A DNA stretch of 64,000 nucleotides from Hypanus sabinus. Lineage: Eukaryota. Position 1 is the stretch's first letter. Each line of letters opens with the position of its first letter. The stretch spans positions 16,616,001 through 16,680,000 of the forward strand of contig NC_082729.1 of NCBI RefSeq assembly GCF_030144855.1, read 5' to 3'. Below are positions 97-53,259 of this stretch, piece after piece. Under the pieces are notes generated by a model, which had not been told where the DNA came from, made no database searches, and saw only the letters and a list, made by a program, of their open reading frames with translations. The position numbers were made by a program, and so were the translations under genes.

Positions 97-325
97 GTAC
101 TGAGAACCCACCAGCATTTGTTCACAAGAGATCGGTCCTTCAACTGCATTGACTGTGCGAGGGATTCACCCACTCATCCCAACTGGAGACACACCAGCGA
201 GTTCACACTGAGGAGAGGCTGGTCACCTGCTCAGACTGTGGGAAGGGATTCTGTCAATCATTTGACCGACAGAGAGACCACGAGTTCACACTGGAGAGAG
301 TCTGTTCACCTGCTCAGATTTTGGG
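97..325 (+). pseudogene. Decayed zinc-finger repeats upstream of the ZNF ORF
   Basis: Finger-like units ([18 protein letters not shown]) with frameshifts and a lost Cys. Confidence 0.7.
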
Positions 326-4084: not shown

Positions 4085-4720
4085 ACTTCTATAGATGTGG
4101 AAAGTATATTGACTGAATGAATTACAGCTGGTATGGAAAGACCCCATTGTCCTTCAATTAGGAATGCCCTACAGAAGGCTGTAGATATGACTTCGTCCAT
4201 CATGGGCAAAGTCCTCCCTGCCATGAGCACATTGTTTCAGGTAGCCATCATCAGAGATCCCCACAGCCCAGGACATGCTCTGTTCTCACTGCTGCTATCA
4301 GGACAAAGGTAAAAGCCTCAGGACTTAACGCCATCAATTTTAGGAATGGTTATTATCCCACAGCAATTGGCTCCTGAATCGAGGGGATAAATTCACCAAG
4401 CAAACACGAGGAAATCTGCAGATGGTGGAAATTCAAACAACACATACAAAATGCTGGTGGAACACAGCAGGCCAGGCAGCATCTATAGGGAGAATTCACT
4501 TCATCGTTGAAACGTTTCCAGAACCTGGTCTCACACTCAAGGGCTCTTCATCTCATGTTCTCAATACATATTGCTTACTCATGATTAATATTATTTATTT
4601 TTGTATTTCCACAGTTTGTATCTTTTGCACACTGGTTGAATGTCCAAGTTAATACTGTCTCCCATTTATTCTATTATAGTTATGGATTTATTGAGTACGC
4701 CCATAAGAAACTGAATCACG
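4085..4720 (+). mobile_element. Rex1/Babar-like LINE 3' end, host of the ERV; its tail resumes at 11468-11515
   Basis: IIRDPHSPGHALFSLLLSG motif. The tail ...cccataagaaactgaatc | ggtgacatatatgtactttgataataaatttactttgaac resembles uninterrupted tails at about 42230-42295 and 48613-48670. Confidence 0.7.
4401..4490 (-). mobile_element. Penelope-like element terminal fragment
   Basis: aaacacgaggaaatctgcagatg...caaaatgctggtggaacacagcaggccaggcagcatctat matches the terminus next to the GIY-YIG remnant at about 35090-35165. Confidence 0.6.
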
Positions 4721-11467: not shown

Positions 11468-11629
11468 GTTGGTGGTGACATATATGTACTTTGATAATAA
11501 ATTTACTTTGAACTTCTTATCTGAATGTGTTGTTACTTCCATTCCATCTATATTTTACATTTTCCTTTTCAGCCCCAATTCTCCAGGTTCCTAGTCCGCA
11601 GTGTTACCCGAAGCGCAGTGTGAGTAGCT

Positions 11630-13719: not shown

Positions 13720-15570
13720 TCCATATTGAAGGTTAGTCGGTAGGCCATTTGGCCCATCAGATCTGTCCGCCATTCAATCGTGGGCGACTATTTTTTCCGG
13801 TCCTCAGCGCCGCTCCCAACATCTCTCCCCCTCTGGTGCCGTGTCCAATCAATAAATTATCGAGATCTGCCTTAAATATACCCAATAATCCGGCCTCCAC
13901 TGCTGCCTGTGGTAATAACTTCTACAAATTCACCACCATCTGGATAAAGGAATTTCTCCACATCTGGTACCCCCAATCCTTTTATAACTCATCATTCTAA
14001 ATTCCAGTGAATACAGACCCAGAGCCATCAAACGTTTAACCCTTTCATTTCCAGATTCATCCTAGTAATCCTCCTCTCCAACGCCAGGACAACTTTTCTG
14101 AGATGAGGGGACCAAAACTGTTCACAATACTCAAGGTGGGGCCTCACCAATCCAATACCTTATAAAGCCTCAGCATTACATCCCTGCTGTTGTATTCTAG
14201 ATCTCATAGGATGAATGCAAACATTGCATTTGCCGTTCTCGCCACTGACTACCTGCAAGTTAACATTTAGGGTGTTCTGTACAAAGTCCCATTGTATGTC
14301 AGATTTTTGGATTTTCTATCCGTTTTGAAAATAGTCTGCACATTTATTTCTACAACCAAATTTGATGACCATACATTTTCCAACATTGTGTTTCATTTGC
14401 CAACATTGCCCATTATTCTAGTCTTAGTCCATCTGAAGCCTACCTGCCCCTCCAGCAATCTTCATATCAGCTGAAAACTCGACAACAAAGCCATCCCATC
14501 TATTCCATCTAAATCATTGATATAAAAAGAAGAGGTCCCAACACCAACCAGCCAACCAGAAGAGGATCTTTTTATTCCCATTCACTGCCTTCTACCAATC
14601 CAGTAAGCAGCCTCATGTGTGGCACCTTGTCAAAGGCCTTCTGAAAGTCCAAATATAGAACATCCACTGCACCCCCTTTATCTATCTTATGTGTAATCTA
14701 CTCAAAAGAATTCCAACAGGTTTGTCATTCAGGAATTTCCCTTAAGGAAGCCAAGTACTCCAGTACTTCATTCTTAAAAATTTACTCCAACATCTTCCCA
14801 ACCACTGACGTAAGGTCTAGAATTTCCTTTCTGCTGCCTTTCTCAGAGTGGAGTGACATTTGCAATTTTCCAGGCCTTTGGAACCTTGCCAGAGTCCAAT
14901 GATTTTTGAAGATCATTACTAATGCCCCCACAGTCTCCACCGCTACCCCTTTCAGAATCCGAGGGTGCATCTCATCTGGTTCAGTTGACATGCATCCTTA
15001 GGTCTTTCAGCTTTTTGAGCATCTTCACCCTAGTAATAGTAACTGCACCCACCTCTCTTCCCTCACACCCTTTAACATCTCGCAGACTGCTACTGTTTTC
15101 CACAGTAAAGACTAATGCAAAATACTCATTTACCTCATCTGCCATCTCCTTGGCCCCTGTTATTAATTTCTCCAGCCTCATTTTTTAGCAGTTCTATGTC
15201 CACTCTCATCTCTCTTTCTTTTTTAATACACTTGAAAAAGCTTTTAGTATGCACTTTGATATTGGCTGTAGCATTACTATCATATATCCTGGATAACTGA
15301 TGCAAAACCTTTTCAGATGTGTTTTCAATTTTTGGAAAATTAAACGATGGTATTATCGGAAAAGAACAAACGCAAAGAGAGGAGTACTGAAATTTAAGTA
15401 AAATGCAGCTCAATAGACAATAGGAGTAGGAGTAGGCCCTTCAGCCTTTCGTGGCAGCACCACTATTCAATGTGATCATGGCTGATCATCCACTATCAGT
15501 ATCCCATTCCTGCGTTCTCCCCATATCCCTTGACTCTGCTATCTTTAAGAGCTCTATCTAACTCTTTCTA
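13720..15570 (-). mobile_element. CR1 LINE fragments
   Basis: PDEMHPRILK, LTSVVGKMLE and SFFKCIK..NEAGEI remnants plus CR1 3' tails. Confidence 0.8.
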
Positions 15571-16272: not shown

Positions 16273-16593
<321 letters not shown>

Positions 16594-16624
16594 GGAACAC
16601 TTTTGGTTCTGAACACAACACAAA

Positions 16625-16640
16625 GGCTCTTCTAAGAGCC
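16625..16640 (+). terminator. Histone 3' stem-loop (H4)
   Basis: GGCTCTTCTAAGAGCC-ACCCA. Confidence 0.95.
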
Positions 16641-17168
16641 ACCCACCACCTCAGAGAGAGAGCAGTGATCCTGAGCAGAAATAGGAGACAGGCGGGCTTG
16701 TTAATTGGAGAGCAGACCCTTTGTGTGTTTCCGTACTTAGATTATTACAGTAGGTGACTGTTAAGAAAAAAACAATATAAGAAATGCAATTAAAGTTACG
16801 TGTTATTTGTAAAGAAAATCAGCAGCTATTCACTTCGGACCGCCAGTCAAACATCGGTATCGGGGCAAAGATGATTTTCAGCCCAAACGGGCGGCTGCTT
16901 GAATTCGATGCCGGATATGAAGCCGATCGCACTGCTAGGGCCTTGACACGATCGGGGCGGACATTCAACTCCCAACAGTCGGCGGATAACTCAGCTCCGA
17001 CATTTCGGACTGTGCACCCACGGTTAAGCCTGTGAGTTGCGTTTCGCACCAATAAGGAATTTCAATTCACCCTGCCTGCTGATTAGTACAACAATCTAAT
17101 CCGATCAAGATCCCCTTCCCCCACGCTCAGCGTATCCGCAGAGCAGCCCTTTCACAGACATTGTGAGT

Positions 17169-17184
17169 GGCTCTGAAAAGAGCC
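17169..17184 (-). terminator. Histone 3' stem-loop (H2A)
   Basis: Minus strand GGCTCTTTTCAGAGCC. Confidence 0.95.
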
Positions 17185-17213
17185 TTTGGGTCACTGGGTC
17201 AGATTCTGTCTTT

Positions 17214-17858
<645 letters not shown>

Positions 17859-18710
17859 CTAATCTAAAAGGAAATCATTGCATGTCTGTTTGTCAGACAT
17901 GCAATGCTCTATTTATGAAGGCCAACGTGTCGACAGCTCTATTTACGGTCCTTGCTACCAGCGAGACCTCTTTCAAAGAATAGATGAGTCTGTATTCCCA
18001 GATCACACTGCAAGTTTCAACTATCTTCGTCGTTGTCCGCTACATTCCCATTCTTTGTTGATCCATTTTACAATATAATCACTCAGTTTGTGATATAGAT
18101 GAGAAAAAAAAACGGACCCAGCTCTGATCCCTGCTTAAGAGGGGAGATGATTTAAATATAGAAAATGGTGATGAGTGGAGATAGTGTAGGTTACAGAGAT
18201 CCCCCCACCCCCCCCCCCATATTAGGTGCAGATAAAACTGCAGGATATGGGGTTTGGTTGAAGGATTTGTTCACCCAGACGGTTGTGAGTTGCTGGAACA
18301 CTGTACCAGAGAGAGTTGTGGAAGTAGTGTCGCTGATGATATTTTCAAAATGTCACTTGAATTCCCAGGCTAAGGACCAAGTGCTGGAAGAATGAATTAA
18401 TATGGATGGATTCCCATTGGTTGGTATTGATGTGATGGGCCAAATGGTCTGTAACAATGCTGAAACATTCTGTAAAAATCGGAATCAATGACTCTCTGCT
18501 ACTAGAAACATGGAAACTTGATAAATATGATAGCCGTATTCACCATCTCTCTCTGCCCTCATTAACCAGTTTCACCTGGCCCTGGTTTATACCAGCAGTT
18601 TATCCTGTTCCGTTGTGGCTAAACCATTGGAAATTGACGGTTGTCAATTGAGAGTCTGTCCGTCCGCCTGCCTTTGTCTCTACCCCTCCCCGTCTCTTAA
18701 TCTCCGCACA

Positions 18711-21700
18711 GTTCAGTTTACACCTGAACTGGAATGGTACAAACATTCTTGCAGGGAAGTTTGCTAGTGCTTCTTGGGGGGGTTTAAACTAAATTTGCAG
18801 GGGTTGGGGATCCAGAATGAGAGAGAGGATAGCGAGATGAAGAATAAAGGATAGGTGGGGACTACAAGGTTCCGGAATATTATGTAGTAGAGAAAGGAGA
18901 GGCGGAACAAGTGATAAGGAGGACACATGTACAGGGGGATGGTCTGACGGAACATGGAGTTAAATGTGCAGAAAGAATAGGTAAATTTAGGAAGGACAAC
19001 AAAATTCTAGGGGTGTATAGCCTGATGGGAGTTCGGGGAGCTGGGTTAAGCACAATAGGCAGAAATTCAAACAGAGAGAGGAGAAATGGGCAAAAAATTC
19101 TATATCTGAATGCATGAAGTGTCAGAAATAAGGCCGATGAGCTTGAAGCTCAGGTGCGAATGGGAAACTATGATGTTGTTGAGATAACAGAGACATGGCT
19201 GCAGGGGGATCAGACCTGGGAAATGAATGTACAAGGGTATATGTGCTATCATAGGGACAGAAATGTGGGCAGAGGGGGTGGGGTGGCCCTGTTGGTGAGG
19301 AATGAGATTCAGTCCTTTGCAAGGGGGGACATAGGATCAGGAGAAGTTGAGTCTGTGTGGATAGAATTGAGGAAAAGTAAGGGGCAAAAGGACCCAAATG
19401 GGTGTTGTCTATAGGCCACCAAACAGTAGCATGGATATTGGGTGCAAGTTGAATAGAGAGTTAACATTGGCATGTGGCAAAGGTAATGTCGCAGTAGTTA
19501 TGGGGGATTTCAACATGCAAGTGAACTGGGAGAATCAGGTTGGTGCTGGACCCCAGGACAGGGAGTTTGTAGAGTGCCTAAAGGATACATTCTTGGAACA
19601 GCTTGTATGAGAGCAGACCAGGGACAAGGCTATTCTGGATTTAGTATTATGTAATAAACAGGATTTGATAAGCGATCTTGAAGTAAAGGAGCCATTAGGA
19701 GGTAGTGATCATAATATGCTAAGTTTTTATCTGCAACTTGAGAAGGATAAGGGCAGCTCAGAGGTGTCAGTGTTGCAGTTGAACAAAGGAGACTATGAAG
19801 CCATGAGGGAGGAGCTGGGCAAAGTTAACTGGCCGGATATCCTAGCAGAAAAGACAGTGGAACAACAATGGCAGGTATTCTTGGGAATAATGCACAAGGT
19901 GCAAAATCAGTTCATCCCCCGGAGAAGGAAGGATTCAAAGGGGGGAAAGGGGTCACTGTGGTTGACAAACTAAGTCAGAGATTGCATAGCATTAAAAAAA
20001 GGAAGTATGACAGAGCTAAGGTGAGAGGGAGGACAGATGGTTGGGAATTTTTTAAGGAACAACAGAACTTAACTAAAAAGGCAATACGGGGAGAAAAAAT
20101 GAGGTACGAACGCAAGCTAGCCAGAAATATAAAGGAGAATAGCAAAAGCTTTTTTAGGTATGTGAAGAGAAAGAAGATAGTTAGGAACAATGTTGGGCTC
20201 TTGAAGAATGAATTGGGTGAAATTGTTATGGGAAACAGAGAAATGGCAGAAGAATGTAATAAGTACTTTAGATCTGTCTTCACTAAGGAAGACACAAGCA
20301 ATCTCCCAGATGTATGGATGGGCCAAGGACATAGGGTAACAGAGGAAATGAAACAGATTGACATTAGGAAGGAAACGGTGATGAGTAGACTGATGGGACT
20401 GAAGGCTGAGAAATCCTCAGGTCCAGATGGTCTGCATCCTAGGGTAATAAAGGAGGTGGCCCTGGAAATTGCGGATGCATTGGTAATCATTTTCCAATGT
20501 TCCTTAGATTCAGGATCAGTTCCTGAGGATTGGAGAATGGCTGATGTTATCCCTCTTTTTAAGAAAGGAGGGAGGGAGAAAACAGAGAACTATCAACCTG
20601 TCAGCCTAACATCAGTAGTGGGGAAGATGCTAGAGTCCATTATAACCATATAACAATCACAGCACGGAAACAGGCCATCTCGGCCCTCCTAGTCCGTGCC
20701 GAACTCTTAATCTCACCAAGTCCCACCTACCTGTACTCAGCTCATAACACTCCACTCCTTTCCTGTCCATATACCTATCCAATTTTACCTTAAATGACAC
20801 AACTGAACTGGCCTCTACTACTTCTACAGGAAGCTCATTCCACACAGCTATCACTCTCTGAGTAAAGAAATACCCCCTCGTGTTTCCCTTAAACTTCTGC
20901 CCCCTAACTCTCAAATCATGTCCTCTCGTTTGAATCTCCCCTACTCTCAATGGAAACAGCCTATTCACGTCAACTCTATCTATACCTCTCAAAATTGTAA
21001 ATACCTCGATCAAATCCCCCCTCAACCTTCTATGCTCCAATGAATAGAGACCTAACTTGTTCAACCTTTCTCTGTAACTTAAGTGCTGAAACCCAGCTAA
21101 CATCCTAGTAAATCGTCTCTGCACTCTCTCTAATTTATTGATATCTTTCCTATAATTCAGTGACCAGAACTGTACACAATATTCCAAAATTGGCCTTACC
21201 AATGCCTTGTACAATTTTAATTTTAATTAAAGATGAAATAGTGGCATATCTAGATAGCAGTGATAGGATTGGGCCGAGACAGCATGGATTTACCAAAGGT
21301 AAATCATGATTGACTAATCTATTGGAGTTTTTTGAGGATGTAACCAGGAAGCTCGACAAGGGAGATCCAGTGGATGTAGTGTACCTTGATTTTCAGAAGG
21401 CATTTGATAAGATCCCACATAGGAGATTGGTGGGTAAAATGAAAGCTCATGGCATTGGGGGGAAGGCATTGACATGAATAGAAAACTGGTTGGCAGATTG
21501 AAAGCAAAGGGTAGCGGTGAATGGGTGTTTCTTGGAATGGCAGGTGGTGACTAGTGGGGTGCCACAGGGCTCGGTATTGGGACCACAGCTGATTACGATT
21601 TACGTCAACGATTTAGATGAAGACATTGAGAATAACATCAGCAAGTTTGCTGATGATACTAAGCTGGGTGGCAGTGTGACATGTGATGAGGATGTTAGGA

Positions 21701-25059: not shown

Positions 25060-25099
25060 ACCCACCACCTCACAGAGAGAGCAGTGACCCGGAGCAGAT

Positions 25100-25320
25100 A
25101 TAGATAGATAGATAGTTAGATATTTTATTCATCCCCAAGGGGAAATTCAACATTTTTCCAGTGTCCCATACACTTATTGTAGCAAAACTAATTACATACA
25201 GTATTTAACTCAGTATAAATATGATATGCATCTAAAATCACCCTCCCAAAAAGCATGAATATAGCTTTTAAAACGTTCTTAAATAGTTTACTATTTAAAC
25301 TACAGTTTACCTACTACTTA
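25100..25320 (-). mobile_element. Short LINE 3'-tail insertion with a (TATC)n end
   Basis: Absent from cassettes 1 and 2. About 100 nt are identical to 50987-51087 in the opposite orientation. Confidence 0.8.
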
Positions 25321-28547: not shown

Positions 28548-29857
28548 GCATGATAAAATACTGTAGGCTGAAGTCAGGATGGTATCCTTAAGGGAAAAGG
28601 TAGCCTGACAAATCTGTTGGAATTATTTGAAGAAATAACAAACAGGATAGATAAAGGAGAATTGATGGCTGTTACGTACTTAAATTTTCAGAAGCTCTTA
28701 ACAAGGTTCCGCACATAAGGCAGCTTAACAAGATAAGAGCCAATGGTATTACAAATGGTATGGATACAGCATTGGCTGATTGGCAGAAGGCAAAGAGTGG
28801 GAATAAAGGGAGCCTTTCCTGGAGTACTACCTGTGTCTAATGGTGTTCCATAGATGTCTGTGTTGGGACCCCTCTTTTTTTTACATAATATGTCAACGAT
28901 TCAGATAATGGAATTGATGGATTTTTGACAAGCTTGTAGATGATACAAAGATAGGTGGGGGAGCAAGTAGTGCTATGGAAGCAGGTAGGCCGCACAAGGA
29001 CTGAAAAAAAAGATAGAAGAATGGGTAAAGAAGTGCCAGATGGAACACTGAGTTGGGAATTGTATGGCTATGCACTTTGAAGAAATAAAAGTGTCCACTA
29101 ATTCTAATTGGAGAGAAAATTCAAAAAATTCGAGGTGCACAGGATACATTAAAGGTTAATTTGCTTGTTGAGTCAGTGGGGAGGAAGCCAGATGTAATGT
29201 TATCATTTATTTCAGGAGGACTAGAATTTAAAAGCAAGGATGTAATGTGGAGGCACTGGTGAGGCCTCATTTGGAGTAGTGAGCATTTTGGGCCTCTTAT
29301 CTAAGAAAGGATGTGCTGACATTGTGGAGTTATCAAAGAAGTTCAGGAAATCAAGACTGGAACAGAAAGGATTGTCATATGAAGTGTATTGGATTGCTCT
29401 GGGCAAATATGAAAGGCTTCAATAGAGTGGATGTATAGAGAATATTTCCTGTGGTCTGGGAGTCCGACACCAAAGGTCACAACCTCAAAATAGAGGGATA
29501 TCCATTTAAAACAGAGATGAAAAGGAATTTCCTTAGCTAGAGACTGGAGAATCTGTGGAATTCATTGCCATAGATGGTCATGTGATGGGGTATACTGAAG
29601 GTAGAGCTTGATAGTTACTTGATTGGTTAGGGCCTGATGTTTATGGGGAGAAGACAGGAGAGGGAAATGGATCAGCCATAATGAAATGGTGGAACAGACT
29701 CGATGATCTTTATCTGCTCCTATGTCTTATAATTGCAATTTCCCCCCTTCTAAGCCCTCATCTCCTCCAAAGTGACAATAGACAATATGTGCAGAAGTAG
29801 ACCATTTGGCCCCTCGAGACTGCACAACTGAGTCTGCACAAGTGAAGTTATCTTTTT

Positions 29858-32083: not shown

Positions 32084-32722
32084 TTACTTTTTGGTCGCCG
32101 TCTTCTTGGCTTTCACGGATTTCGCCTTCGGCTTAGGTTTTGCCGATTTCTTGGGCGCCTTCGCCTTCGGAGCTGAAATCTTCTTGGGGCTCTTGGGCTT
32201 CTGCGCAGCCTTTTTCGCCGCTGGTTTCTTAGCTGCCGTCTTTTTAGCGGCCGGTTTCTTAACACTTTGTTTCTTGGCGGGAGATTTCTTTGCTGCTTTC
32301 TTGGCCGCAGTTTTCTTGATCGCTGGCTTCTTGGCCTGAGAAGTCTTGGCCGCTGGTTTCTTCGTTTTTTTCACGACATTGGCGGTACTGCCTTTTTTAG
32401 CGGCTTTGAAGGAGCCGGAGGCACCTGCGCCCTTGGTGTGAACCAGGGAGCCGCTTTCCAATTTCCTTTTAATGACCATCTTTATCTGACTTTTGAGCTT
32501 TTCCACATCGACGCCGTTAGCGGCCAACTCCTTCTTTATCGCGACTATGGACACCCCTCGGTGACTGCGGCAATCCGCCACAATCTTGTCGATCTGTTCG
32601 CCCAATTTGGGACCGGCTGGCTTGGTCCGGGCGGTCGTCTTCTTCTTCTTCTTCTTGGGAGCCTTGGTTGCTGCTGCGGGCGCCGCTGGAGGAGCGACTT
32701 CAGCAGTTGCGGTCTCGGTCAT
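32084..32722 (-). CDS. H1: Linker histone H1, replication-dependent, divergent globular domain (212 aa)
   Basis: MTETA start, winged-helix end TKGAGASGSFK, and a Lys/Ala/Pro tail with SPKK-like motifs. Confidence 0.95.
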   Translation of the reverse strand: MTETATAEVAPPAAPAAATKAPKKKKKKTTARTKPAGPKLGEQIDKIVADCRSHRGVSIVAIKKELAANGVDVEKLKSQIKMVIKRKLESGSLVHTKGAGASGSFKAAKKGSTANVVKKTKKPAAKTSQAKKPAIKKTAAKKAAKKSPAKKQSVKKPAAKKTAAKKPAAKKAAQKPKSPKKISAPKAKAPKKSAKPKPKAKSVKAKKTATKK

Positions 32723-36259: not shown

Positions 36260-38658
36260 CTGTGGTGTATTGCAGGGATCTGTGCTGGGTCTTCTGTTGG
36301 TTGTCATATCCAGTATACTGATGATCTGGAAGAGATTATAGGTGCGTGATTTGGAAGTTTCCAGATGACACCAACATTGATGGTATGATGGACAATGACA
36401 AAGGTGGTGTAAACTACAAGAGGATGGACATTAGTTGTGTAAATAGACAAGGAAATGACAGCTGGAATTTTCTTCAGACAAATCCAAAGTGTAGACTTTT
36501 GGTCAGTTAAACCAGGGCAGAAGATTACACAGAGAGAGGCAGTGCCCTGGAAGGCACTGCAGAACAGAAAGACTGTTTGGTATAATTCCTAAAAGTGCAG
36601 ATGTAGGCGGACAAGGCGGCAAAGAAAGCAATTGGCACACTTGCCATCATTGGTTAGGACAATGAGTAAGAGAGTTGGGATGCTGTGTTACAACTGTACA
36701 AGGTGTTGTGGTGAGATTGCACTTGGGTACTGTGTGCAGTTCTGGTCACCTAGCTACAAGAACGATGTAATTCAGCTGCAGTTGACGCAGAAAACCCTCA
36801 CAGGGTTGTTACTGGAGGGCTGGAGTTACAAGAGGAGACTAGGACAGGGTGGGACTGTTTGTTCTGGAGCACAGGAAGATAAGGGTGAATTTAAGGAGGT
36901 ACATTAAGGCTCTCTGTAGCCTCACACTGTGTATGTTTCTTCCGTCCCTATGCCCTTCTGAAATGTCTGCTCTCCCACATCAGTGGGCCATTTGCATTGT
37001 TACTTCCCTCAGTCAGATTGAGGACCTGTGACCAGAGGTGGGCTGCGGGGATCTGTGCTCTGTTGTTTGTCACATGCATTCATGATTTGTGTGAGAATGT
37101 AAACAGCATGAGTAATAAATTTGAAAATGACACCATCAGACAAAGGAACAGAATTAGGCCATTCAGCCCATCAATTCTGTTCTGTCATTCCATCATGGCT
37201 GTTTTATTATCCTTGAAGCCCTGACAAATCAAGACCTATCAACCTCCGCTTTAAATATCCTCAATGAATTGGACTCCACAGCAGTCTGTAGCAATGAATT
37301 CCACAGATTCACCATCCTCGCTGAAGAAATTCCTCCTCACCAGTTCTAAATGGGCAAACTTGTACTGTGAACCTATCCTCTCTAGTCCAAGATTCACCCA
37401 CTACGTCCTCTCCATATCCACTCCATCTAGGCCTTTCAATGAGATCCCTCCTCAGTCCTCGAATCTCCAAGTACAGGCCCAGAATCATCAAATGCTGCTT
37501 AACTCTTTCATTCCCAGAATCATTGTTGTGAACCTTCTCTGGACCATCTCTAATGCCAGCACATGTTGCTCAAAATACTCAAAGTGCAATCTGAGCATTA
37601 CCTTATAAAGCCTCAGCATCAGATCCTTACTCTTATATTCCAGTCCTCTGAAATGAATGCTTAACATTGCATTTGTGTTCCTTAGCACCAACTCAACTTG
37701 CAAATTAACCTTTAGGGAACTTTGCACAAGCACAAGGACTCCTAAAATCCCTTTGCACCTCTGATTTAAAAAAAAAATTTTCTCCCCACTTAGAAGATTG
37801 TCTACACCTTTGTTTCTTCTACCAAAGTGCATGATCATACACTTCTGGACACAATATTCCATCTGCTACTTCTTTGCCTAATCTAACAAATGTTTCTAAG
37901 TCCTCTGCACACTCCCTGCTTCTATAGCTGTCCATCCACCCATCTTTGTATCATTTGCAGTCTTGATCACAAAGACATCAACTCCAATATGCAAATCATT
38001 GACATATAATGTGAAAAGAAGTGGTCCCAAGCCAACCCCTGGGGAACACCACTAGTCACCATCAGTCAATCAGAAAATTCCAATTTTGGTGGTGAGACAG
38101 ACTAATTAGGAGTGTGGGATAGGAAATGGACTGTGGGATTTAACTGAGCCAAGTGCAAAGTGAGGAATTTTGAAAATTTATTTCAGAGCAGGGCTTACAT
38201 AGTAAATGACATGTCTCTGAGAGTTGGAAAACAGAGACAAAGTGTTGAAACAGGTAGACAGAGTGTTGAAGAAGCATCTGGTACATTTGCCTTCATCAGT
38301 TAGAGTATTGAGTACAGTGCCTTGCATGTCATGTCACAAAGTAGCAGAAAGCACAAGGTTGTTACAGCTCAGGTCACCCTGGAGTTTGGTGGTCCATTTC
38401 AGTGCCATCTATAAGGAGAGTACATTTTCCCTGTGAACACATGGGTTTCCTCAGAGTGCTCCAGTTTCTCCCACACTGAAGACATATCAGTTAGGAGGTT
38501 AGTTGGTAACTGTAAATTGTCCTGTGATTAGGCCAGAGTTAGATAGGTGGGTCTCTGGGTGGTGTGACTCATTGGTCCAGAGGGGCCTGCATTGTGAGAG
38601 GATGAAGATATAACAAGTCCTGAGGGACAATTTTTTCACACAGAGGATGGTGAGTAAG
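36260..38658. mobile_element. Nested CR1 fragments (plus-strand 36260-36910; minus-strand insert about 37135-38085) and a V-SINE (about 38365-38590)
   Basis: DDTNI, YCVQFWSP and LEMVQRRFTTMI remnants; V-domain gggtttcctc..gtgctccagtttctcccaca. Confidence 0.7.
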
Positions 38659-39459: not shown

Positions 39460-40775
39460 CCTACCTGCCTGAACTTTGAGGACCTGTCTGCCTGCCTGTC
39501 CCCCGAGGACCTGCCTGAACCCCGGGGACCTCTGCCTGCCTGATCCTGGGGACCTGTCTACCTGCCTGCCTGAATCCTAAATCCCGGGGACAGTCTGCCT
39601 GAACCCTAAGGACTTGCCTGCCTGAACCTGGGGACCTGTCTACCTGCCTGCCTGTCCCCCAAGAACCTGCCTGAACCCCGGGGACCTCTGCCTGCCTGAA
39701 CTTCGAGGACCTGTCTGCCTGCCTGAACTTCGAGGACCTGTCTGCCTGCCTGAACCCCGAGGACCTGTCTGCCTGCCTGAACCCCGAGGACCTGTCTGCC
39801 TGCCTGAACCCCGAGGACCTGTCTGCCTGCCTGAACCCCAAGGACCTGTCTGCCTGCCTGAACCCCGAGGACCTGTCTGCCTGCCTGAAACCCGAGGACC
39901 TGTCTGCCTGCCTGAACTTCGAGGACCTGTCTGCCTGCCTGAACTTCGAGGACCTGTCTGCCTGCCTGAACTTCGAGGACCTGTCTGCCTGCCTGAACTT
40001 CGAGGACCTGTCTACCTGCCTGCTTGCCTGAACCCCGGGGACCTGTCTACCTGCCTGAACCCCGAGGACCTGTCTGCCTGCCTGAACTTCGAGGACCTGT
40101 CTGCCTGCCTGAACTTCGAGGACCTGTCTGCCTGCCTGAACCCCGAGGACCTGTCTGCCTGCCTGAACCCCGAGGACCTGTCTGCCTGCCTGAACCCCGA
40201 GGACCTGTCTGCCTGCCTGAACCCCGAGGACCTGTCTGCCTGCCTGAACCCCGAGGACCTGTCTGCCTGCCTGAACTTTGAGGACCTGTCTGCCTGCCTG
40301 AACTTTGAGGACCTGTCTGCCTGCCTGAACTTCGAGGACTTGTCTGCCTGCCTGTCCCCCGAGGACCTGCCTGAACCCCGAGGACCTGCCTGCCTGAACC
40401 CGGGGACCTGTCTACCTGCCTGCCTGAATCCTGAATCCCGGGGACCGTCTGCCTGAACCCTGAATCCCGGGGACCGTCTGCCTGAACCCCAAGGACCTGC
40501 CTGCCTGAACCTGGGGACCTGTCTACCTACCTGCCTGTCCCCCGAGGACCTGCCTGAACTTCGAGGACCTGTCTGCCTGCCTGAACTTCGAGTGCCTGTC
40601 TGCCTGCCTGAACCCCGAGGACCTGCCTGCCTGAACCCGGGGACCTGTCTACCTGACTGCCTGAACCCGGGGACCTGTCTACCTGCCTGCCTGAACCCGG
40701 GGACCTGTCTACCTGAACTTGAACTTTGGGAGACCGCTCCGCTCTGCCTGCCTGAACTCTACCTACCTGAACCCC
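39460..40775. repeat. 27-bp minisatellite (gaggacctgtctgcctgcctgaac[ccc/ttc]); about 23-24 regular units at about 39704-40345 plus variant flanks
   Basis: Directly visible head-to-tail array with no spacers. Confidence 0.97.
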
Positions 40776-43800: not shown

Positions 43801-44700
43801 ATCTATCCAGGAAAAGGCCATTTTAGATGTAAACTGTATAACGAGATTAATAAGAGATTTTCTGTGAAGGATCCATGAGGGAGAATTCTTCCCAACATGA
43901 CACAGTGTAGACTGCAAGATATAGGAACAGAATTAGGCCATTTGGCCCATCAAGTGTGCTCCACTAGTTCAGCCTGGCTGGACCAACTTCCTTCTCAACC
44001 CCAATCTCCTGCCTTCTCCCTGTATCCCTTCATGACCTGAACAATCAAGAATCTATCTACCTCTGCTTTAAATTTACATTAAGACTTGGCACACACAGCT
44101 ACCTCTGGCAAAGAATTCCACAGATTTACCACACTCTGGCTAAAGAAATTCCTCCTCATCTGTTCTAAAAGGATGCCCCTCTATTCTGAGGCTGTGACCT
44201 CTGATCTTAGACTCTCCCACCACAGGAAACATCCTCTCCACGTCCATTCTATCAAGGCCTTTCACCATTTGATAGATTTCAATGAGGTCGCCCCTCATTC
44301 TTCTGAATTCTAGTGAATACTGTACAGGACCGGAATCATCAAAAACTCTTCATATGACAAGCCATTCAAACCTGGAATCAACACAAGTCCAGAACCAATA
44401 TTCTCAACCTAAATAAAGGCAGTTAAGCGGGTGTAACGTTGGAGTTGTCTAGAGCGGTCGGGTAAGCAGGCTCAAGGACAGATTAGTAGATGACCAGTGA
44501 CAGGTGTTTAAACAGCTGCTTCATAACTTTAAGTAGATATTGACTCCAGTTATACAGAGGGATCCAGGAGAAAGATGAACTATCTGTGGTCAACAAACGA
44601 GGTGAAGGGGAAATATTAAATCAAAGACCAGAGCACAGAAAGAGCGAAAGGTAGACCAGCAGACTGAAAATGCGCCAGGAAGCAGTGCTGGAGACACTCA
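40879..44700. mobile_element. Mixed decayed CR1 and other LINE fragments
   Basis: Several CR1 RT, EN and 3'-tail remnants on both strands (for example IIGEFN, and a minus-strand 3' end at 43915-44380). Confidence 0.65.
43215..43545 (+). mobile_element. Short bipartite RTE-derived non-autonomous element
   Basis: RTE 5'UTR-like aaaggaggagagttggacatggggcgagtaacccc joined to an RTE-like 3' end with a (taac)n tail. Confidence 0.5.
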
Positions 44701-44919
44701 AAATCTAGTAAAACTAGTAGGGAAATTGTCATGAGTTAAACTCAAACCATGAAAAGTGTTCACATTGGGGAAATAGCAAATCTCCCAAATATAATACTTG
44801 TTTGACATTGCAATTCTGCAATAGTTTACAAGAATCACCATCATGAGAGAAAAAACTAATGGGAATAAAAGCAAAACGTCACCAGGTCCCAACGTCCTGC
44901 ACTTGATGGTTTTACAGGA

Positions 44920-44993
44920 ACACGTACAACAAGCTGGAGGAGCTTCTTGTACGTGTTGCTTGGACCACAGCATCTGCAGTGTACTTCGTGTTT
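44920..44993. mobile_element. Miniature Penelope-like insertion with inverted terminus
   Basis: 14-15 bp TSD atggttttacagga(a) at 44906 and 44994; 17-bp inverted repeat; matches the Penelope terminus seen elsewhere in the window. Confidence 0.75.
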
Positions 44994-45124
44994 ATGGTTT
45001 TACAGGAAGTGCCTGGAGAGAAAGTGGAGAGAGAAGTTGAATTTTGTCAAAACTCACTGTGTTCCAGGAAGGCCCAGGAGTTTCATATACGTCTCCATTG
45101 TTCGAGAAAAACTTCAGCCCCGCT

Positions 45125-45349
45125 CCGGACCGTTGCCGGGGAAACGACGTCGGTGAAGGACCATCTGTGACGTCAGCGCGTCCTGGATCGGCAAATCCGC
45201 AGGGTGTCACGTGACCGTGAGACAGCGGCCCGGGAGGTGGGAAAGAGGGAGCTGCCAATCAGAGGAGCTGTTGGGAACCTTGTGAACGTTGTAACTAAAT
45301 CACTGAACCCCTCATTAAAACAAAGAGCGTCGCTGAAGAACATTTGTCA
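45125..45349 (-). promoter_or_regulatory. CpG-rich promoter-like module, copy A
   Basis: X-box GTTGCCGGGGAAAC at 45132 overlapping CCGTTG; CRE TGACGTCA at 45168; GTCACGTGAC at 45206; CCAAT at 45255. Inverted homolog at 48675-48898. Strand is inferred. Confidence 0.65.
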
Positions 45350-45417
45350 AAGTCAAAGTAAATTTACCATCAAACCACGTATATGTCACCCTACCTTGAG
45401 ATTCTTTCCTTACAGGC

Positions 45418-46135
45418 TGAGAAAAGTCCATCTCTCACCACCCCCAATCCTCACCACATTCTACAAAGGATGTATCGAGAGCATCCTGAGCAGCTGCATC
45501 ACTGCCTGGTTCGGAAATTGCACCATCTCGGATCGCAAGATCCTGCAGCGGATAGTAAGGTCAGCTGAAGGGATCATCGGGGTCTCTCTTCCCGCTATTA
45601 CAGACATTTAAACCACACGCTACATCCGCAAAGTAAACAGCATTATGAAGGACCCCACGCACCCCTCGTAGAAACTCTTCTCCCTTCTGCTACCTGGCAA
45701 AAGGTACCGAAGCATTCGGGCTCTCACGACCAGACTGTGTAACAGTGTCTTTCCCCCAAGCCATTAGACTCCTCAATTCCCAGAGTCTAGTCTGAAACCA
45801 ATTTACACACACACACACACCTGAACACCACTCCACTCCCTTTGCAATTTTTGCTTATTTCTTTCTCGATTCCTGCTAAAACATTGTTTACATTTACATC
45901 ATTTATTATTATATTGTAATATGCCCTTTACTGTGCCTATTGTCTTGTTTATTAATTATTGTACTGTCTTGCACTGTTTTATGCACTTTATGTAGTCCCG
46001 TGTAGGTCTGAAGTCTAATGTAGTTTTGTGTTGTTTCATGCAGCACCAGGGTCCTGGAGGAACATTGTTTCGTTTTTACTGTGTACTGTACCAGCAGTTA
46101 TGGTTGAAATGACAATAAAAGCAACTTGACTTGAT
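45418..46135 (+). mobile_element. Rex1/Babar-like LINE 3' end
   Basis: [30 protein letters not shown]; tail gacaataaaagcaacttgacttga. Confidence 0.85.
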
Positions 46136-47129
46136 AAATGCAAAGGGATTCATGACAATTATAAATGGCACAGATTGACAAAAAAATTGAAACTTGAAAG
46201 TTTGCATATTGTGGAATTATTTCAGTGAAGGTTATCCATGCTGTCTCAAGAGTATGACTTGTGGTGATGTGGGACCAAAGACTCCTGTATTTCCTCGCCA
46301 ATGGCAGCAGCCAGAAGAGAACATGGCATCGATGAGGGATGTCCTTGATGACAGATGTTGCTTACTCATGGCAGAACTCCTTGTAACTGAGCTCAATGAT
46401 GGGGACATCTTTGCCTGTGATGAACCGGGCACTTTTTGTAGCTTTACCGTTCCTGGGCATTGGTGTCTCCATTCCAGGCTGTCATACTTTGACAAGTTAC
46501 ACTCCTCTGTGCATGCCAAATTATCTCAAAGTTTTAAATGACATACCGATTATACACAAACTTCTAAGTAAAGCCGCTGTCGGACGTGCCTTTTTGTAAT
46601 GGCACTTACATGCTCGTCACAGGACAGATCCTCTGAAACGATAATGTCAAAGAATTTGAAGTTTGCATTCACCATCTCTGTAACACTCATGAAGTTAGCA
46701 TTCATTTTGAGATGACTAGAATATAAAAGCAAGGAAGTAATGCTGAGACTTTGGAAGGCATTGCTGAGAACACCCTTGAGATATTGTGAGCAGGTTAGGG
46801 ACCCTTATTAAAAAAAGGATGTTGTGGAGGGTCCAGAGAATTTCATGAGAATGACCCCAGGAAAGAAAAGGCTAAGATTTCAGCAGCATTTGATAAATCT
46901 GAGCTGTTTTCACAAGATTAGAAGAACGAGGAGGGAGGGAACTCATTGAAGCCCATTGAATATTGAAAAGCATGGATAGAATAGCTGTGATGAGGATGCT
47001 TCCTATAGCGGGGTAGTCTAGGACTGGAGGACCCCGCCTCAGAATAGAAGAACATACATTTAGAACAGAGATGAGGAAAAATTTCTTTCACCAGAGGGTG
47101 CAGAATCTGTGGAATTCATTGACAAATTG

Positions 47130-47990
47130 GGAGGAGGCCACACAGGGATCAGTGGATACAGTCATTCCCCAGTGGGCATGCAGTGTTTCCTCTCCTGGAG
47201 GGATCTTCTTGTATACTGAATGGAGGTAAGGGAGGAGGTGAAGGGGCAGGTGTGGCGTATGTTGTGCTTGCAGGGTTAAGTACCCAGAGGGAGATCACGG
47301 GGAAGAGTTGAATGAACAAGGGAGTCACGGAGAGCACAACCCCAGCAGCAAGCAGGGTGTGGGGTGGAGGGAAAGATGTGTTTAGCTGTGGGATATCTTT
47401 GAAGATGGCAGAATTGATGGAAAATGAAGTGCTGGATATGAATGGGGTGGTAAGTAAGGACAAGGGGAACTCTATCCCTGTTACGGCTGCAGGCAGACGA
47501 GTGAGGCCGGATGTCTGGGAAATGGACGAGATATGGCAGATGAATGCATCAACAAGAGAGGAAGGCAAACTCCATTCTTTGAAGTAGGAGAACATCTCTA
47601 ATGTTTTGGGAAGGATAGCCTCATCCTGGTAACAGATACAATGGAGATGAAGAAACTGAGAAAAAGGAATGACATTTTGACATGTAACAGGGTGTAAAGG
47701 AATTTAATCGAGATAGCTGTGAGACTCAGAATTTTTATGAAAGATATCAACAGACAGTCAGACTCCTGAGTGGATACAGAGAGATTGAGAAATAAGGGAG
47801 AGGTGACAGAGATGGACGAAGTGAATATAAGGGCAGGGTGGAAGTTGGAGGCAAAGGTGATGAAGTTGACAAGCTCAGCACAGGTGCAAAATGCAGCGCT
47901 GATGCGATCGTCAAAAAAGCACAGAAAAATTTGGGGTGCGTTACCAATGAAGGCTTGGAACATGAAATGAACCGTGTAACCCACTTTCTT
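47130..47990 (-). mobile_element. Penelope-like element RT fragment
   Basis: FFDDRISAAFCTCAELVNFITFASNFHPALIFTSSIS..FLNLSVS is the Penelope YIDD..F..HP.L.FT..FLD region. Confidence 0.8.
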
Positions 47991-48089
47991 CACCAGTATC
48001 TCATCTCAGTGATGTGTATTAGTGCATATCTTCAGACTAGTCCCACATTCCAAGCTGACACCATCTTGTCTTACAAAACTTTCATTTTC

Positions 48090-48371
48090 TGTTACACAGT
48101 TTAGCAGATACCAAGCAGGAGTCAAATGTAACTCTTTCCTTACACACTATCCATTGGTTCCTCATCGGGACCTTATGCAGGAACAAAACACTAGACTAAA
48201 TACAAGTTGCAAGATAACTACAGGAATTATATATATCTTATAACTTAAGCAGAGGAATTATCGCAACATGAATTGCATATGGGTAACAAATCACTGAATA
48301 CAGGAGAGGCCTGAAGCTGCAGCTGCCCAATCTCTTGTTTAAAGCAGTAAGATCAAATAAACTGTGCTACA
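48090..48371 (+). mobile_element. Possible solo LTR
   Basis: TGT...ACA termini with a 14-bp imperfect inverted repeat (tgttacacagttta / taaactgtgctaca) and AATAAA just before the 3' end. No TSD found. Confidence 0.35.
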
Positions 48372-48674
48372 AAACTAATGTAGGACTTTGACAAGATTGA
48401 AAAGGATCCAAGCTGCAACATGCCTGATCCATGTAGACAACAATAAGGTGGACCTATCTTTTCTAAAAATTCAAAAAGCTTTCAGTTCTACACAACTCAT
48501 GTTACAGTATTGTTTATTAATTTGCACGATTTGTCTTTTTTTGCACATGGTTGTTTGTCAACCTGTGCCGTTTATAGGTTTCATAAATTCTGTTGCATTT
48601 ATTTTCTTGTAAGAGCCCACAAGAAAATTAATCTCAACGTAGCAGATGGTTTGATAATAAATTTACTTAGATCA

Positions 48675-48898
48675 TGACAAATATTCATTAGTGACGCTCT
48701 TTGTTTTCATGAAGGGTTCGGTGATTTATTTATAATGTTCACAAGGTTCCCAACGGCTCCTCTGATTGACAGCTGTTCCTTTCCCCTGGCCGGGCTGTTA
48801 CCTCACCGTCACGTGACAGCCTGCGATTTGCCGACCCTGGCGCGTTGACGTCATAGAGAAGGCTCTTTACTGACGTCGTTTCCTCGGCAACGGCCCGG
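48675..48898 (+). promoter_or_regulatory. CpG-rich promoter-like module, copy B
   Basis: GTCACGTGAC at 48808; TGACGTCA at 48846; X-box GTTTCCTCGGCAAC at 48878 overlapping CAACGG. About 80% identical by eye to copy A, inverted. Confidence 0.65.
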
Positions 48899-49059
48899 TC
48901 AGCCCTGGGCGGCAAGGACAAAATCAGTGGGCAGACAGATGGGGATTTAAGCTTTCAATAGCTAAAACTCAAAACATGTTTCACAAGAAGGACTTGCACT
49001 TGAATGGAAATTATATAGTAGGTTACTTGAAGAAGTGTCATCGGTAAGATTTCTAGGCA

Positions 49060-50650: not shown

Positions 50651-50990
50651 AGTGGGGTCATTCTGTACTTGCTGCGTTTTGACGCCACTGTGAGCATCAG
50701 CGTCTTCTCTTCCTGCCTGCTGCCCCAGGGAGTGTAAGCGTCTGTCAGTTCCTTACTGCCCTGGCTCCCTACCTGATGCTTTCCATTCCAATCTTCGGGC
50801 CCACCTGCCTCCTTGGTACTCACCCCTCAATCTCTCTGTAACCTCCTCCCATCGTGATAAACTCTCACAGATCTGCTCTCATCCCTCAGTGGCTCTTTTG
50901 CATCAACTCATCTGCTCCCTTTTCAGATTAGAGACCTGTGACCAGTGGTGTGCTACAGGGATCCGTGCCTGCTGCCCTGTTGTTTGTCAT

Positions 50991-51107
50991 ATTTATACTG
51001 AGTTAAATACTGTATGTAATTAGTTTTGCTACAATAAGTGTATGGGACACTGGAAAAATGTTGAATTTCCCCTTGGGGATGAATAAAGTATCTATCTATC
51101 TATCTAT
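50991..51107 (+). mobile_element. Short LINE 3'-tail insertion with (TATC)n, inside a CR1 fragment
   Basis: Splits the host motif LLFV|YIN; identical to part of 25100-25320. Confidence 0.8.
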
Positions 51108-53259
51108 GTACATTAATGGTTTGGATGTGAATGTTGATAAATAAGTTCACTGATGGTTGCAAAGCTGGTAGTAAGGTCACAACAGGATGTGGATAAACTA
51201 GATGGAATTTAACTCACAGAAGTTCAAAATGATGCACTTTTGCAAGTTAAACGAGGACAAGACTTAGACAATAAGGGGCAGAACCCAGAGAGTGTTGTAG
51301 AACAGAAAGACCTCGGAGAACATGGTTCATTGAAAGTGATAACAGTGTAGACTTGGTGGTGAAGAAGTCCTGTGTCATAAGTCCTTCATTAGGGATCTGA
51401 GTACAAGAGTTATAGTGCATTATTACAAGTGTCCAATATGTTGATGAGACTGGAGTTGAATTGTTGCTGAACAAAGAAAGGAAGTGTTTCAGCAGGAGTT
51501 CCAAGGAGAGACTGGAAATACTGGGTCTGTTTTCCCCCAGAATGTGGAAAGTTGAGCGTTGAGCTTATGTAGAGAATGTTTTCTCTCAGTCCCAGTTAAA
51601 ACCTTTCCCCACTCTCCTTAAATCTGTGCCCTCGAGTTTTAGATTCCTCTGTGCTTGGAAAAGTCTGAGTCCATTCACACTGTCTGTGCCCCTCAGGACT
51701 TTATGTCCTCTAAGTTCACCCCTCATCCTTGTAAGCTCCAGGGGAGAAACACCAACTTATGCTGTGTCTACGTATAACTCAATCCCTCCGTTCCCATAAT
51801 ATCATGGTGAATCACCTCTCCAGTGCAATCTCACCCTTCCTATTGTGTGACACCAGACTGTGCACAATGCTACAGCTGTGGGCCGATTCATGTTTTAAAA
51901 GTCCTTCCAACACTTCTGTTCTGTTCCACAGCTAGTGAAGACTGGCATTCTTCATTCTATCTGCTTCTGCCACCTTTAGGATCTGTGTATCTGTACATTA
52001 AGATCCCTCTATTTCTCAGTTCTCCCTCAGATCCCACCAATCATGGAATGTTGTACCCTTATTTAACGTAAGATAAATGTCTCACAGTTATCAAGATTAA
52101 ATTCTGTGTGGCCATAACAATTTAAATATTTCAGTGCCGCAACAGTCTCTACTGTTGTCACCTACAGTAGCCTGAAGTACATCTAATGAGGCACTGGGGA
52201 TTTATCCACCTTTAGCCCTGCTAAGACATTGTATATCCCCTCCTGTGTTAATCTTCATCTGCTCTGCAATTTCACTGCACCAACTGAAATCTCCAAACAC
52301 AATGCCTTTCTCTTGGTGAATACAGCTGAGAGCTATTTATTTCACCTGTCCACCTCCTCTGGTCCTGTACACAGGGTGTCACTTTGCTCCACAAAAGGCC
52401 CCACTTATTATATTTTGTGACATGTCTTTGCCCTTCTATTTTCTCCTTTCAAACTCTCCACATGTTCACTCCATGATGAGTCTTTCCCTTTTGCATTAGG
52501 AGAGTTTTAGACTCCCCTAAACTTCTTGCCCCTTTCGAGCTTAATGACATTCTTCCTATAAATGGGTGAGTAGAACCACACATAATATATTGTGGTCTCA
52601 CCACTGGCTTGTACAATGACAACATGAAGTCCCAACTCATGTATTCCAAGCCACAATTGATAAAGGCAATGTAGCAAATGTCTTCCTCACCACCCTGTCT
52701 ACGCTTTCAGAGAACTATGTACTTGTGCTCCTTGATCTATTTGTTCTCCAACTCTCTGGAGGTCCCTACTTGTTGCCACAGATACACCTGTGTGTGCCCC
52801 TGTCTAAGAGTTTTCTGTTACTGTTGCTCACCAAAAGCACAGAACAGTACAACTTAGGAACAGGTCCTACTTCCCACGATGACTCTACTGAACACAATGC
52901 CAAATGCAACTGGTATTTATCAAGGATAAAGGGGAAGCATTTGCTTAGATTTGGAGAATTCGTGTGAAGTATTTAATGAGTACGTTGCTTCCGAATTTAC
53001 CACGTGAAAACTTATGGAAAACTAGGAGATCAGTGCCAAGTGTATAAATATGTTAGGGGATTTAGAGGTCAAGGAGGAGGAAGCATTGAGTCGCCTCATG
53101 AGTATTAAGGTGGATAAGTCCCCAGGGCCTGATGAGATTTACCCCGGTATGCTGTACATTTGCAGCAGAATCTCCCTGCTCTTCAATTGAAAACCTCTCG
53201 CAATGAAGGCAGACATTCCTTTTGACTTTTTAATAACCCACTGAGCCTGCAAACCAACC

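Follow-up and report, generated by a model that had tools for sequence, protein, structure and literature searches.

Non-methylated islands mark promoters across vertebrates (PMC3583005), and in the genomes of cartilaginous fish methylation is global, sparing regulatory elements such as start sites (PMC5437953). Several described systems come close to the arrangement reported here. Orphan CpG islands, or orphan non-methylated islands, are short, CpG-rich stretches, dense in factor sites, that have no annotated gene near them and keep their CpGs in a CpG-depleted, globally methylated genome (PMC3583005), usually over at least 200 to 500 bp. In mouse spermatocyte promoters, RFX2 and A-MYB are linked, and X-boxes occur in proximal promoters such as those of H1t and Alf (PMC2797782); in placental mammals, A-MYB and TCFL5 drive the pachytene piRNA genes (PMC9808571), A-MYB piRNA promoters, as documented in mammals, usually being single and bidirectional. 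In maize, the terminal inverted repeats (TIRs) of MuDR, of roughly 200 bp, act as promoters of its two genes (PMC8224964).

In the histone-cluster region of Hypanus sabinus, we analyzed a window of 64 kb (the whole stretch of DNA under study) that holds two copies, A and B, of a module in inverted orientation, with n = 2 copies in the 64 kb. By blastn, A 45125-45377 and B 48898-48647 are 81.6% identical over 255 columns (E = 5e-64), and the longer pair of A 45125-45418 and B 48898-48614 is 78% identical over 297 columns; the same inverted homology was recovered by a repeat search and in a MAFFT alignment. Copy A is interrupted by a LINE insertion, after which the homology picks up again (A 46134-46185 against B 48602-48551, 81%), and pairwise comparison found no homology past 46185 and 48551. 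The arms thus delimited are about 350 to 400 bp long, with an identity of 78 to 82% and sharp outer ends, the homology stopping at most about 10 nt beyond the X-box in both copies; outside these ends, pairwise alignments of the outward flanks of A and B found no shared homology. A preliminary description of this DNA had put the inverted homologs at about 80% by eye, limited them to just past the X-box and noted a weaker homology into a LINE tail, and the alignments agree on each point, the last of these extending further than had been noted, to A 46185 and B 48551.

Table 1. Features of the inverted pair and its immediate surroundings (window coordinates)
Feature	Position	Strand	Content or basis
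Copy A core	45125..45231	+	X-box-like site, GACGTC, full CRE, E-box palindrome; GC 0.65, CpG o/e 1.23
Copy A proximal part	45232..45345	+	CCAAT 45255-45259; degenerate TATA position ~45290-45299; CpG-poor
Copy A LINE 3' tail (L2-like), ends at module, within duplicated unit	45346..45418	-	22-mer match, alignment
Later 5'-truncated LINE insertion, splits copy A	~45419..46133	+	ORF tail, AATAAA, CTTGA-repeat end; absent from B
Copy A LINE continuation	46134..46505	-	46134-46185 homologous to B 48602-48551
Copy B LINE 3' tail, ends at module	48495..48680	+	aligns to LINE copy 4577-4717
Copy B proximal part	48681..48793	-	TCAAT 48765-48769; TATA box TATAAATA 48727-48734
Copy B core	48794..48898	-	X-box-like site, GACGTC, CRE, E-box; GC 0.60, CpG o/e 1.28
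Candidate outward first exon, A only	45052..45099	-	ATG 45097-45099 in good Kozak context, 41-nt open frame, GTGAGT donor 45052-45057
TSD-like 9-mer TCAGCCCCG	45114..45122	.	just outside copy A
TSD-like 9-mer partner TCAGCCCTG	48899..48907	.	just outside copy B

The shared unit of about 400 bp is a module of 220 bp fused to the 3' tail of an L2-like LINE, which points at the module and joins it at the same junction in both copies. A 22-mer from this tail occurs at 45353-45374, 48650-48671 and 11490-11511, where 0 matches are expected by chance. In copy B, positions 48495-48633 align to a LINE copy at 4577-4717 (score 40, null maximum 20), and the LINE similarity stops at about 48495; in copy A, positions 46301-46505 align to the ORF end of the LINE copy at 4099-4298 (score 31.5, null maximum 17.5). 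A stretch of LINE 3' untranslated region kept in B is missing from A. The pair originated from one LINE insertion followed by partial inverted copying, copy B having the look of a truncated copy. The second LINE entered copy A later; its 5' junction can be placed anywhere from 45419 to 45427, and its target-site duplication (TSD) is not significant. Three other origins were considered and set aside: (i) LINE 3' transduction, for which B has the layout (LINE 48495-48680 followed by the module), but the TSD is not significant (P = 0.38-0.49; for A alone, P = 0.11); (ii) a SINE origin, rejected because the module lies beyond the 3' terminus of the LINE and not upstream of it; and (iii) the long terminal repeat of an endogenous retrovirus, rejected because the arms are inverted, not direct, and do not resemble the window's ERV-like element (4.8-10.2 kb).

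Both cores carry the same series of motifs. An X-box-like site of the form GTTGCC-NN-GGAAAC (A 45132-45145, B 48878-48891) is immediately followed by GACGTC, then by a full CRE, TGACGTCA (A 45168-45175, B 48846-48853), and by a 10-bp E-box palindrome, GTCACGTGAC (A 45206-45215, B 48808-48817); the full CRE and the 10-bp E-box are absent from the rest of the 64 kb by motif count. Further in, conservation does not embrace the proximal elements as a set: the CCAAT of copy A has become TCAAT in copy B, and copy A in turn has a degenerate TATA position. This motif set is as the preliminary description gave it. Its further claim, that the motifs are conserved while the spacers drift, is weakly supported: mismatches between A and B fall in 2 of 47 motif columns as against 39 of 176 other columns (Fisher p = 0.002), but the motifs were picked post hoc, and 18 nt, the longest stretch of identity, is an unremarkable length (P = 0.68).

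Two known promoter layouts resemble parts of this series. In the SXY module of MHC class II and class I genes (RFX at X1, CREB at X2, NF-Y at Y), as here, a CRE-like half-site comes right after an RFX site and a CCAAT lies further on; the X2-to-Y distance in that layout is about 17-20 bp. Here X1 adjoins X2, but about 100 bp separate X2 from the Y box, which is inverted, and an S box is absent; this layout rules the module out. The proximal promoter of testis histone H1t type (PMC2797782) likewise has an X-box, CCAAT and TATA, and the neighborhood is a histone cluster, but no histone ORF follows here and neither an H1 box nor a GC box is present. An H1 or H1t promoter was ruled out on layout, and no similarity was found to any histone promoter in the window, including the window's own H1 promoter.

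The cores differ from everything around them in their CpG content. Within the 105-bp cores the CpG observed/expected ratio is 1.23 in A and 1.28 in B, compared with 0.2-0.45 in the flanks, and the CpG retention amid CpG-depleted surroundings that had been described for both copies is real. CpGs common to A and B make up 12 of 16 in the cores and 1 of 8 in the rest of the co-duplicated unit (Fisher p = 0.006), a small comparison of 24 scored CpG positions; outside the core, 5 of the 7 CpG differences are changes of CG to TG or CA. Non-CpG K2P distances come to 0.23 for the core, 0.17 for the proximal part and 0.24 for the LINE tail (about 0.2 overall), and because this divergence is about equal across the three, there is no general constraint on the core. 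Since motif and CpG positions overlap, selection on the motifs is inseparable from hypomethylation. As the CpGs have been kept in both copies, the cores are probably unmethylated in germ cells, and this pattern indirectly supports their resemblance to promoter or other regulatory DNA that is kept unmethylated in the germ line. With a GC content of 0.60-0.65 and a CpG ratio above 0.6, both copies have the composition of a CpG island; in length they fall short of the approximately 200 bp of such an island, the cores being about 105 bp and the next 114 bp CpG-poor. Like orphan islands, the cores are short, CpG-rich and dense in factor sites; they differ in being smaller, in forming an inverted pair fused to a LINE tail, and in that their unmethylated state is read from substitutions.

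No protein-coding gene was called in 32.7-42.7 kb or in 48.6-58.6 kb, about 10 kb on either side, in line with the lack of a nearby protein-coding exon remarked on earlier, and a Pfam search of the local ORFs gave no domain. A protein-level search with the 60-aa ORF across module B and exact-ORF look-ups gave no match. Pattern scans for further copies in metagenome and viral contigs, where ray DNA is hardly to be expected, returned 0 hits. Across 44-50 kb, Rfam returned no RNA family except a sub-threshold mir-310 match inside the inserted LINE, and a hairpin at 44897-44979 was ruled out as a pre-miRNA, its stem being only about 16 bp. The minus-strand ORF at 47149-47993 has the look of a Penelope-like element protein, an identity for which Pfam, Atlas and a homologue search gave no support.

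The reading that we prefer, tentatively and at a little under an even chance, is a single inverted duplication of about 400 bp whose cores are small orphan non-methylated islands with an inward promoter order. According to it, a segment of about 400 bp, comprising the module and the 3' end of the L2-like LINE, would have given rise, in a single event, to an inverted copy about 3.3 kb away, B (48495-48898) being the truncated copy, and A, having retained more of the LINE, would afterwards have lost part of the 3' untranslated region and gained the second LINE insertion. Each 105-bp core is packed with predicted CpG-containing sites for widely expressed families, namely CREB/ATF, USF/MYC/TFE-type bHLH-ZIP, RFX and NF-Y; from these sites we infer factor binding in germ cells, which would leave the CpGs unmethylated and shield them from deamination while the surroundings decayed. 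The order of elements, X-box, CRE, E-box, CCAAT and TATA, runs inward, and in B the CCAAT position lies 35 nt from the TATA. Judged from this spacing, inward starts may lie near 45320 in copy A and 48705 in copy B, relative to which the elements would sit at about -185 (X-box), about -170 (CRE half-site), about -150 (full CRE), -110 (E-box), -65 (CCAAT) and -30 (TATA). Any transcription from the two copies would converge, running through antisense LINE sequence and further TE debris, and would yield short-lived or non-coding products. The preliminary description had these promoters facing outward, a view that conflicts with the element order, with a homology that extends inward and not outward, and with the position of the outward donors in unrelated flanks.

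Alternatively, the arms may be the TIRs of a non-autonomous DNA transposon or of another multi-copy inverted-repeat element, with inward promoters as in maize MuDR, a reading in favor of which the inward layout and the sharp outer ends count; motif conservation between the arms would then reflect family-level constraint on transposase or promoter sites, and CpG retention either that constraint or a young insertion. Mutator-type TSDs are 9 bp long (9-11 bp), and directly outside the pair there is a direct repeat of two 9-mers with one mismatch (shuffle P = 0.024, uncorrected for several tests), which, if a true TSD, would speak more for something mobile or multi-copy than for a single local duplication. 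On the other hand, this repeat is one of several tests, lies 2 nt from the homology edge of A and falls in a partly palindromic, GC-rich stretch. The comparison with MuDR and Mutator (PMC8224964) holds for the two inverted arms of about 200 bp, the inward promoters and the possible outer 9-bp repeat, but in this animal genome a domain search of the internal ORFs found no transposase remnant, nor is there a mudrB-like gene, between the arms, and the inner 175 bp of each arm is ordinary LINE tail, running on in A into the LINE ORF, so that such a TIR would have formed after the LINE insertion. We consider this origin unlikely, though worth keeping in view. A more specific version, to which we give a very slight chance, makes the pair one of a dispersed inverted-repeat family whose arms would be autonomous, germline-unmethylated promoters, convergent over a few kb of TE fragments and yielding double-stranded RNA for endo-siRNA or dual-strand piRNA.

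The remaining explanations turn on what, if anything, the copies transcribe. The preliminary description proposed outward germline promoters of the A-MYB/RFX/CREM kind, from which long non-coding RNAs, possibly precursors of piRNAs, would extend through the TE debris on either side. The CpG retention points to germ-cell activity or occupancy, a GTGAGT donor does lie on the minus strand about 70 nt outside A, where it had been noted, and the published links between RFX2, A-MYB and spermatocyte promoters, and between A-MYB/TCFL5 and pachytene piRNA genes, count in its favor. RFX, NF-Y and CRE sites, common in spermatogenic promoters, are present here, and a germline-active promoter without a protein product in TE-rich DNA would look similar (PMC9808571, PMC10754281). 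Against this stand a published TCFL5 motif other than CACGTG (PMC10754281), an A-MYB/TCFL5 piRNA circuit whose documentation comes from placental mammals, and a spacing of CCAAT and TATA that suits the opposite direction, the direction here being probably inward. The MYB argument itself is not supported: CAACGG amounts to an X-box half-site with two further bases, has 19 occurrences in the window and is found once per copy overlapping the X-box half-site (a second one is in B only), a single weak hexamer. Nor do the copies have in common a downstream region from which a piRNA precursor would be transcribed, the flanks beyond the X-box being unrelated in A and B. We judge the proposal improbable and a piRNA role speculative. 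That the module might instead be the promoter of a ZNF family, as was also suggested, finds no echo in the window's ZNF gene, to which blastn detected no similarity. Alternatively, copy A could be the working promoter of an unannotated spliced gene or lncRNA that runs outward on the minus strand, with a first exon that would hold the ATG at 45099 and end at the donor at 45057; B would then be a dead copy, and a partial one, confined to the upstream region. The strong Kozak ATG, the 41-nt open frame and the consensus donor speak for such a gene, as do the end of B's copy almost exactly at the expected TATA-less start site and the upstream LINE in the same orientation, a common arrangement; yet a GTRAGT within 150 nt has a chance of about 7%, the candidate exon has no counterpart in B and no homology to its flank, no gene was called in 32.7-42.7 kb, 33-45 kb showed neither coding potential nor a domain, and CpG retention is as good in B as in A, although a dead copy would not be expected to keep its CpGs. 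We hold this, too, to be doubtful. Finally, the pair may lack a function and be the relic of an old duplication, its CpG retention stemming from small numbers or GC bias; at most, it would act as an inverted repeat that forms hairpin RNA on read-through. The few CpG positions scored, the loss of CCAAT in B and of TATA in A, the insignificant longest conserved run and the absence of a nearby gene all suit a relic, but within one unit of equal age the core stands apart from the remainder, and both copies have independently kept CpG ratios near 1.25 at a K2P of 0.2, which leaves this explanation a slim chance.

The meaning of the pair is incremental under either of two outcomes, and as yet has no bearing on piRNA biology. 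If it belongs to a repeat family whose inverted ends carry promoters, TE annotation in ray genomes would gain a useful entry, and, were the double-stranded RNA version true, the pair would be a vertebrate counterpart of promoter-bearing TIRs or of Mu killer-like silencing triggers. If instead both cores are truly unmethylated and transcribed, they would indicate that, in a cartilaginous fish, about 100 bp of CRE, E-box and X-box sites suffice against methylation long after duplication (K2P about 0.2), and would add a case of convergent non-coding transcription over TE debris next to a histone cluster.

Two inverted modules of about 220 bp, each continuing inward into a LINE tail, make up copy A (45125-45418) and copy B (48898-48614). 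Positions 45125-45377 of A align with 48898-48647 of B at 81.6% identity (E 5e-64), and a looser alignment extends the homology to 45418 and 48614 at 78%, bearing out the inverted pair reported in the preliminary description; no third copy of the module was found within the 64-kb window. The MYB, RFX, CRE, E-box and CCAAT motifs named there were all found in place. The X-box-like site, GTTGCC-NN-GGAAAC, has one mismatch relative to the ideal inverted repeat of GTTGCC, which has a 0- to 3-nt spacer (PMC2797782), and the full CRE and 10-bp E-box palindrome are, in the 64 kb, confined to the two modules. The claim that motifs are conserved while spacers drift is weakly supported: mismatches affect 2 of 47 motif columns versus 39 of 176 spacer columns (p=0.002), but the motifs were chosen post hoc and the longest identical run does not stand out.

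The retention of CpGs within CpG-depleted surroundings is evident from the observed/expected ratios, which are 1.23 and 1.28 in the two cores (the CpG-rich part bearing the X-box-like site, CRE half-site, full CRE and E-box) versus 0.2-0.45 around them. The duplicated unit is of one age throughout and so serves as an internal control for CpG decay. In the core (45126-45231, 106 bp), 12 of 16 CpG positions are CpG in both copies, compared with 1 of 8 in the remaining approximately 240 bp, comprising the CpG-poor proximal part and the LINE tail (Fisher p=0.006, counts small), where five of the seven CpG differences are CG versus TG or CA. Outside CpGs, the two copies have diverged equally throughout the unit (K2P: core 0.23, proximal part 0.17, LINE tail 0.24), which indicates that the core is not under general constraint and that the CpGs alone have been spared. 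Of the 10 core CpGs that lie away from the named motifs, 6 are common to both copies, a pattern more in keeping with hypomethylation than with selection on the motifs alone. In cartilaginous fish, methylation is pervasive across the genome but spares regulatory elements (PMC5437953), and vertebrate promoters in general are marked by non-methylated islands (PMC3583005). The preferred interpretation is that the two cores have probably been unmethylated in the germline ever since the duplication.

The inner portion of both arms is an L2-like LINE 3' tail directed toward the module, on the minus strand in A and on the plus strand in B. Its 22-nt end, made up of a poly(A) signal and a short tail repeat, is found again at 11490-11511 (0 matches expected by chance), and 48495-48633 in B aligns with the 3' UTR of another LINE copy at 4577-4717, with a score of 40 (null maximum 20). 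The LINE/module junction is identical in both copies (45345/45346 in A, 48681/48680 in B), so that one LINE insertion predates the copying of tail and module together. A second, 5'-truncated LINE occupies about 45419-46133 in A, B being uninterrupted there; past it the homology picks up again (46134-46185 versus 48602-48551), and on this alignment it was inserted later than the copying event. The first LINE of A runs on into ORF sequence (46301-46505) and lacks at least about 56 nt of 3' UTR still present in B, where LINE similarity ends at about 48495. In the simplest history, A would be the original locus, with deletion and insertion afterwards, and B an incomplete copy, about 400 bp long and inverted. 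An extremely 5'-truncated, 40-bp copy of the same LINE tail (11474-11515) lies some 120 bp ahead of a CCAAT box and immediately upstream of a histone gene promoter. The ORF tail of the inserted LINE (45420-45608) matches Pfam ALKBH8_N (PF09004; E=2.9e-4, just under the cut-off), probably through the model catching LINE-derived sequence with no real relation to ALKBH8.

The outward orientation proposed earlier was not upheld. Reading inward, the elements run X-box, CRE half-site, CRE, E-box and CCAAT, B has a perfect TATAAATA 35 nt beyond the CCAAT position, and the spacing is that of a standard promoter, with CCAAT near -65 and TATA near -30. Homology reaches inward and ends no more than about 10 nt beyond the X-box on the outer side; none was found between the outward flanks, and the outward donors (GTGAGT at 45052-45057 in A, GTAAGA about 140 nt past B) are non-homologous and each moderately likely by chance. 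Together, these features favour predicted promoters that face inward, i.e., convergently; starts would fall near 45320 (+) and 48705 (-), with the LINE tail beginning some 25 nt further on. Neither copy has both elements, however: the CCAAT box is broken in B, and in A the TATA position is degenerate. CpG-type promoters are also frequently divergent. Outward of copy A only, an ATG in good Kozak context opens a frame of 41 nt that is followed by a consensus donor, a candidate first exon; against this, there are no gene calls in 32.7-42.7 kb, and coding sequence was not found in 33-45 kb.

A serious rival explanation is that the pair belongs to a multi-copy repeat family or is a TIR element. A direct 9-mer flanks the whole pair (TCAGCCCCG at 45114-45122, TCAGCCCTG at 48899-48907; P=0.024, uncorrected), and inverted arms of about 200 bp with inward promoters, here predicted ones, are the arrangement in the maize Mutator element MuDR (PMC8224964). 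On the other hand, no transposase remnant was found between the arms, and an ordinary LINE tail forms part of each arm, leading on in A into the LINE body. A SINE is ruled out by the position of the module past the LINE terminus, the layout differs from that of the MHC SXY module, and the modules share no similarity with the ERV or the histone promoters in the window. Rfam yielded no matching family, and protein-level proxy searches for module relatives gave no matches.

The suggested ZNF-type promoter is unsupported, the modules showing no similarity to the window's ZNF gene. The MYB argument is weak, involving a single CAACGG that overlaps an X-box half-site, a hexamer occurring 19 times in the window. 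The A-MYB/TCFL5 piRNA circuit is documented in placental mammals, and the motif published for TCFL5 differs from an E-box (PMC9808571, PMC10754281). Outward direction, MYB control and a piRNA role are unsupported.

The histone cluster and the CTDNEP1-like copy bound the gene-poor interval in which the pair sits. The window, from the stingray assembly GCA_030144855.1, also has two tRNA genes.

Annotated features of the window
Feature	Position	Strand	Remarks
C2H2 zinc-finger array	151-1855		
ERV-like pol gene	6.2-8.2 kb	minus	
Replication-dependent histone cluster	about 10-33 kb		six histone 3' stem-loops
H1 gene	32087-32722		
Minisatellites	39-41 kb		
CTDNEP1-like intronless gene	58.6-59.4 kb		

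Within the histone cluster, a public gene call at about 22.7-26.2 kb (locus coordinates 16515-19633; span 3.1 kb) has a product of 260 aa carrying two Histone domains and two H2A C-terminal domains; either two H2A genes were merged in one model or the double H2A is genuine and spliced. The GC-rich minisatellite at 39666-40715 (27-bp unit, about 39 copies) has a CpG observed/expected ratio of about 0.4 although its GC content is 60%, and both strands carry open ORFs in which no domain was found. A 127-bp stretch at 50987-51113, 2 kb past copy B, is 97% identical, inverted, to 25098-25224 in the histone cluster, far above any TE pair nearby, and could be a recent transfer or young repeat.

Outside copy A by 150-230 nt, a short near-perfect palindrome (44897-44979; stem about 16 bp, loop 5 nt) folds in its 108-nt context at -39 kcal/mol (z = -3.7) but falls short of pre-miRNA length; direct copies of ATGGTTTTACAGGAA lie at about 44907 and 44993. 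Between the arms, 47149-47993 (minus strand) holds about 280 codons open save one in-frame stop, in two adjacent ORFs of 131 and 148 aa; the sequence appears to resemble what Penelope-like retroelements, which are common in sharks and rays, encode, but Pfam, Atlas and a homologue search gave no match. A dispersed repeat unrelated to the modules (46694-47124) has copies at 44106-44320, 29199-29570, 14093-14222 and 37292-37661 (66-82% identity).

To summarize, the observation in the preliminary description is confirmed and its interpretation partly supported, in that the sequence points to promoter-like, orphan and probably germline-unmethylated DNA. Most likely, a small orphan promoter-like island, fused to a LINE tail, was partially duplicated in inverted orientation to give the pair.
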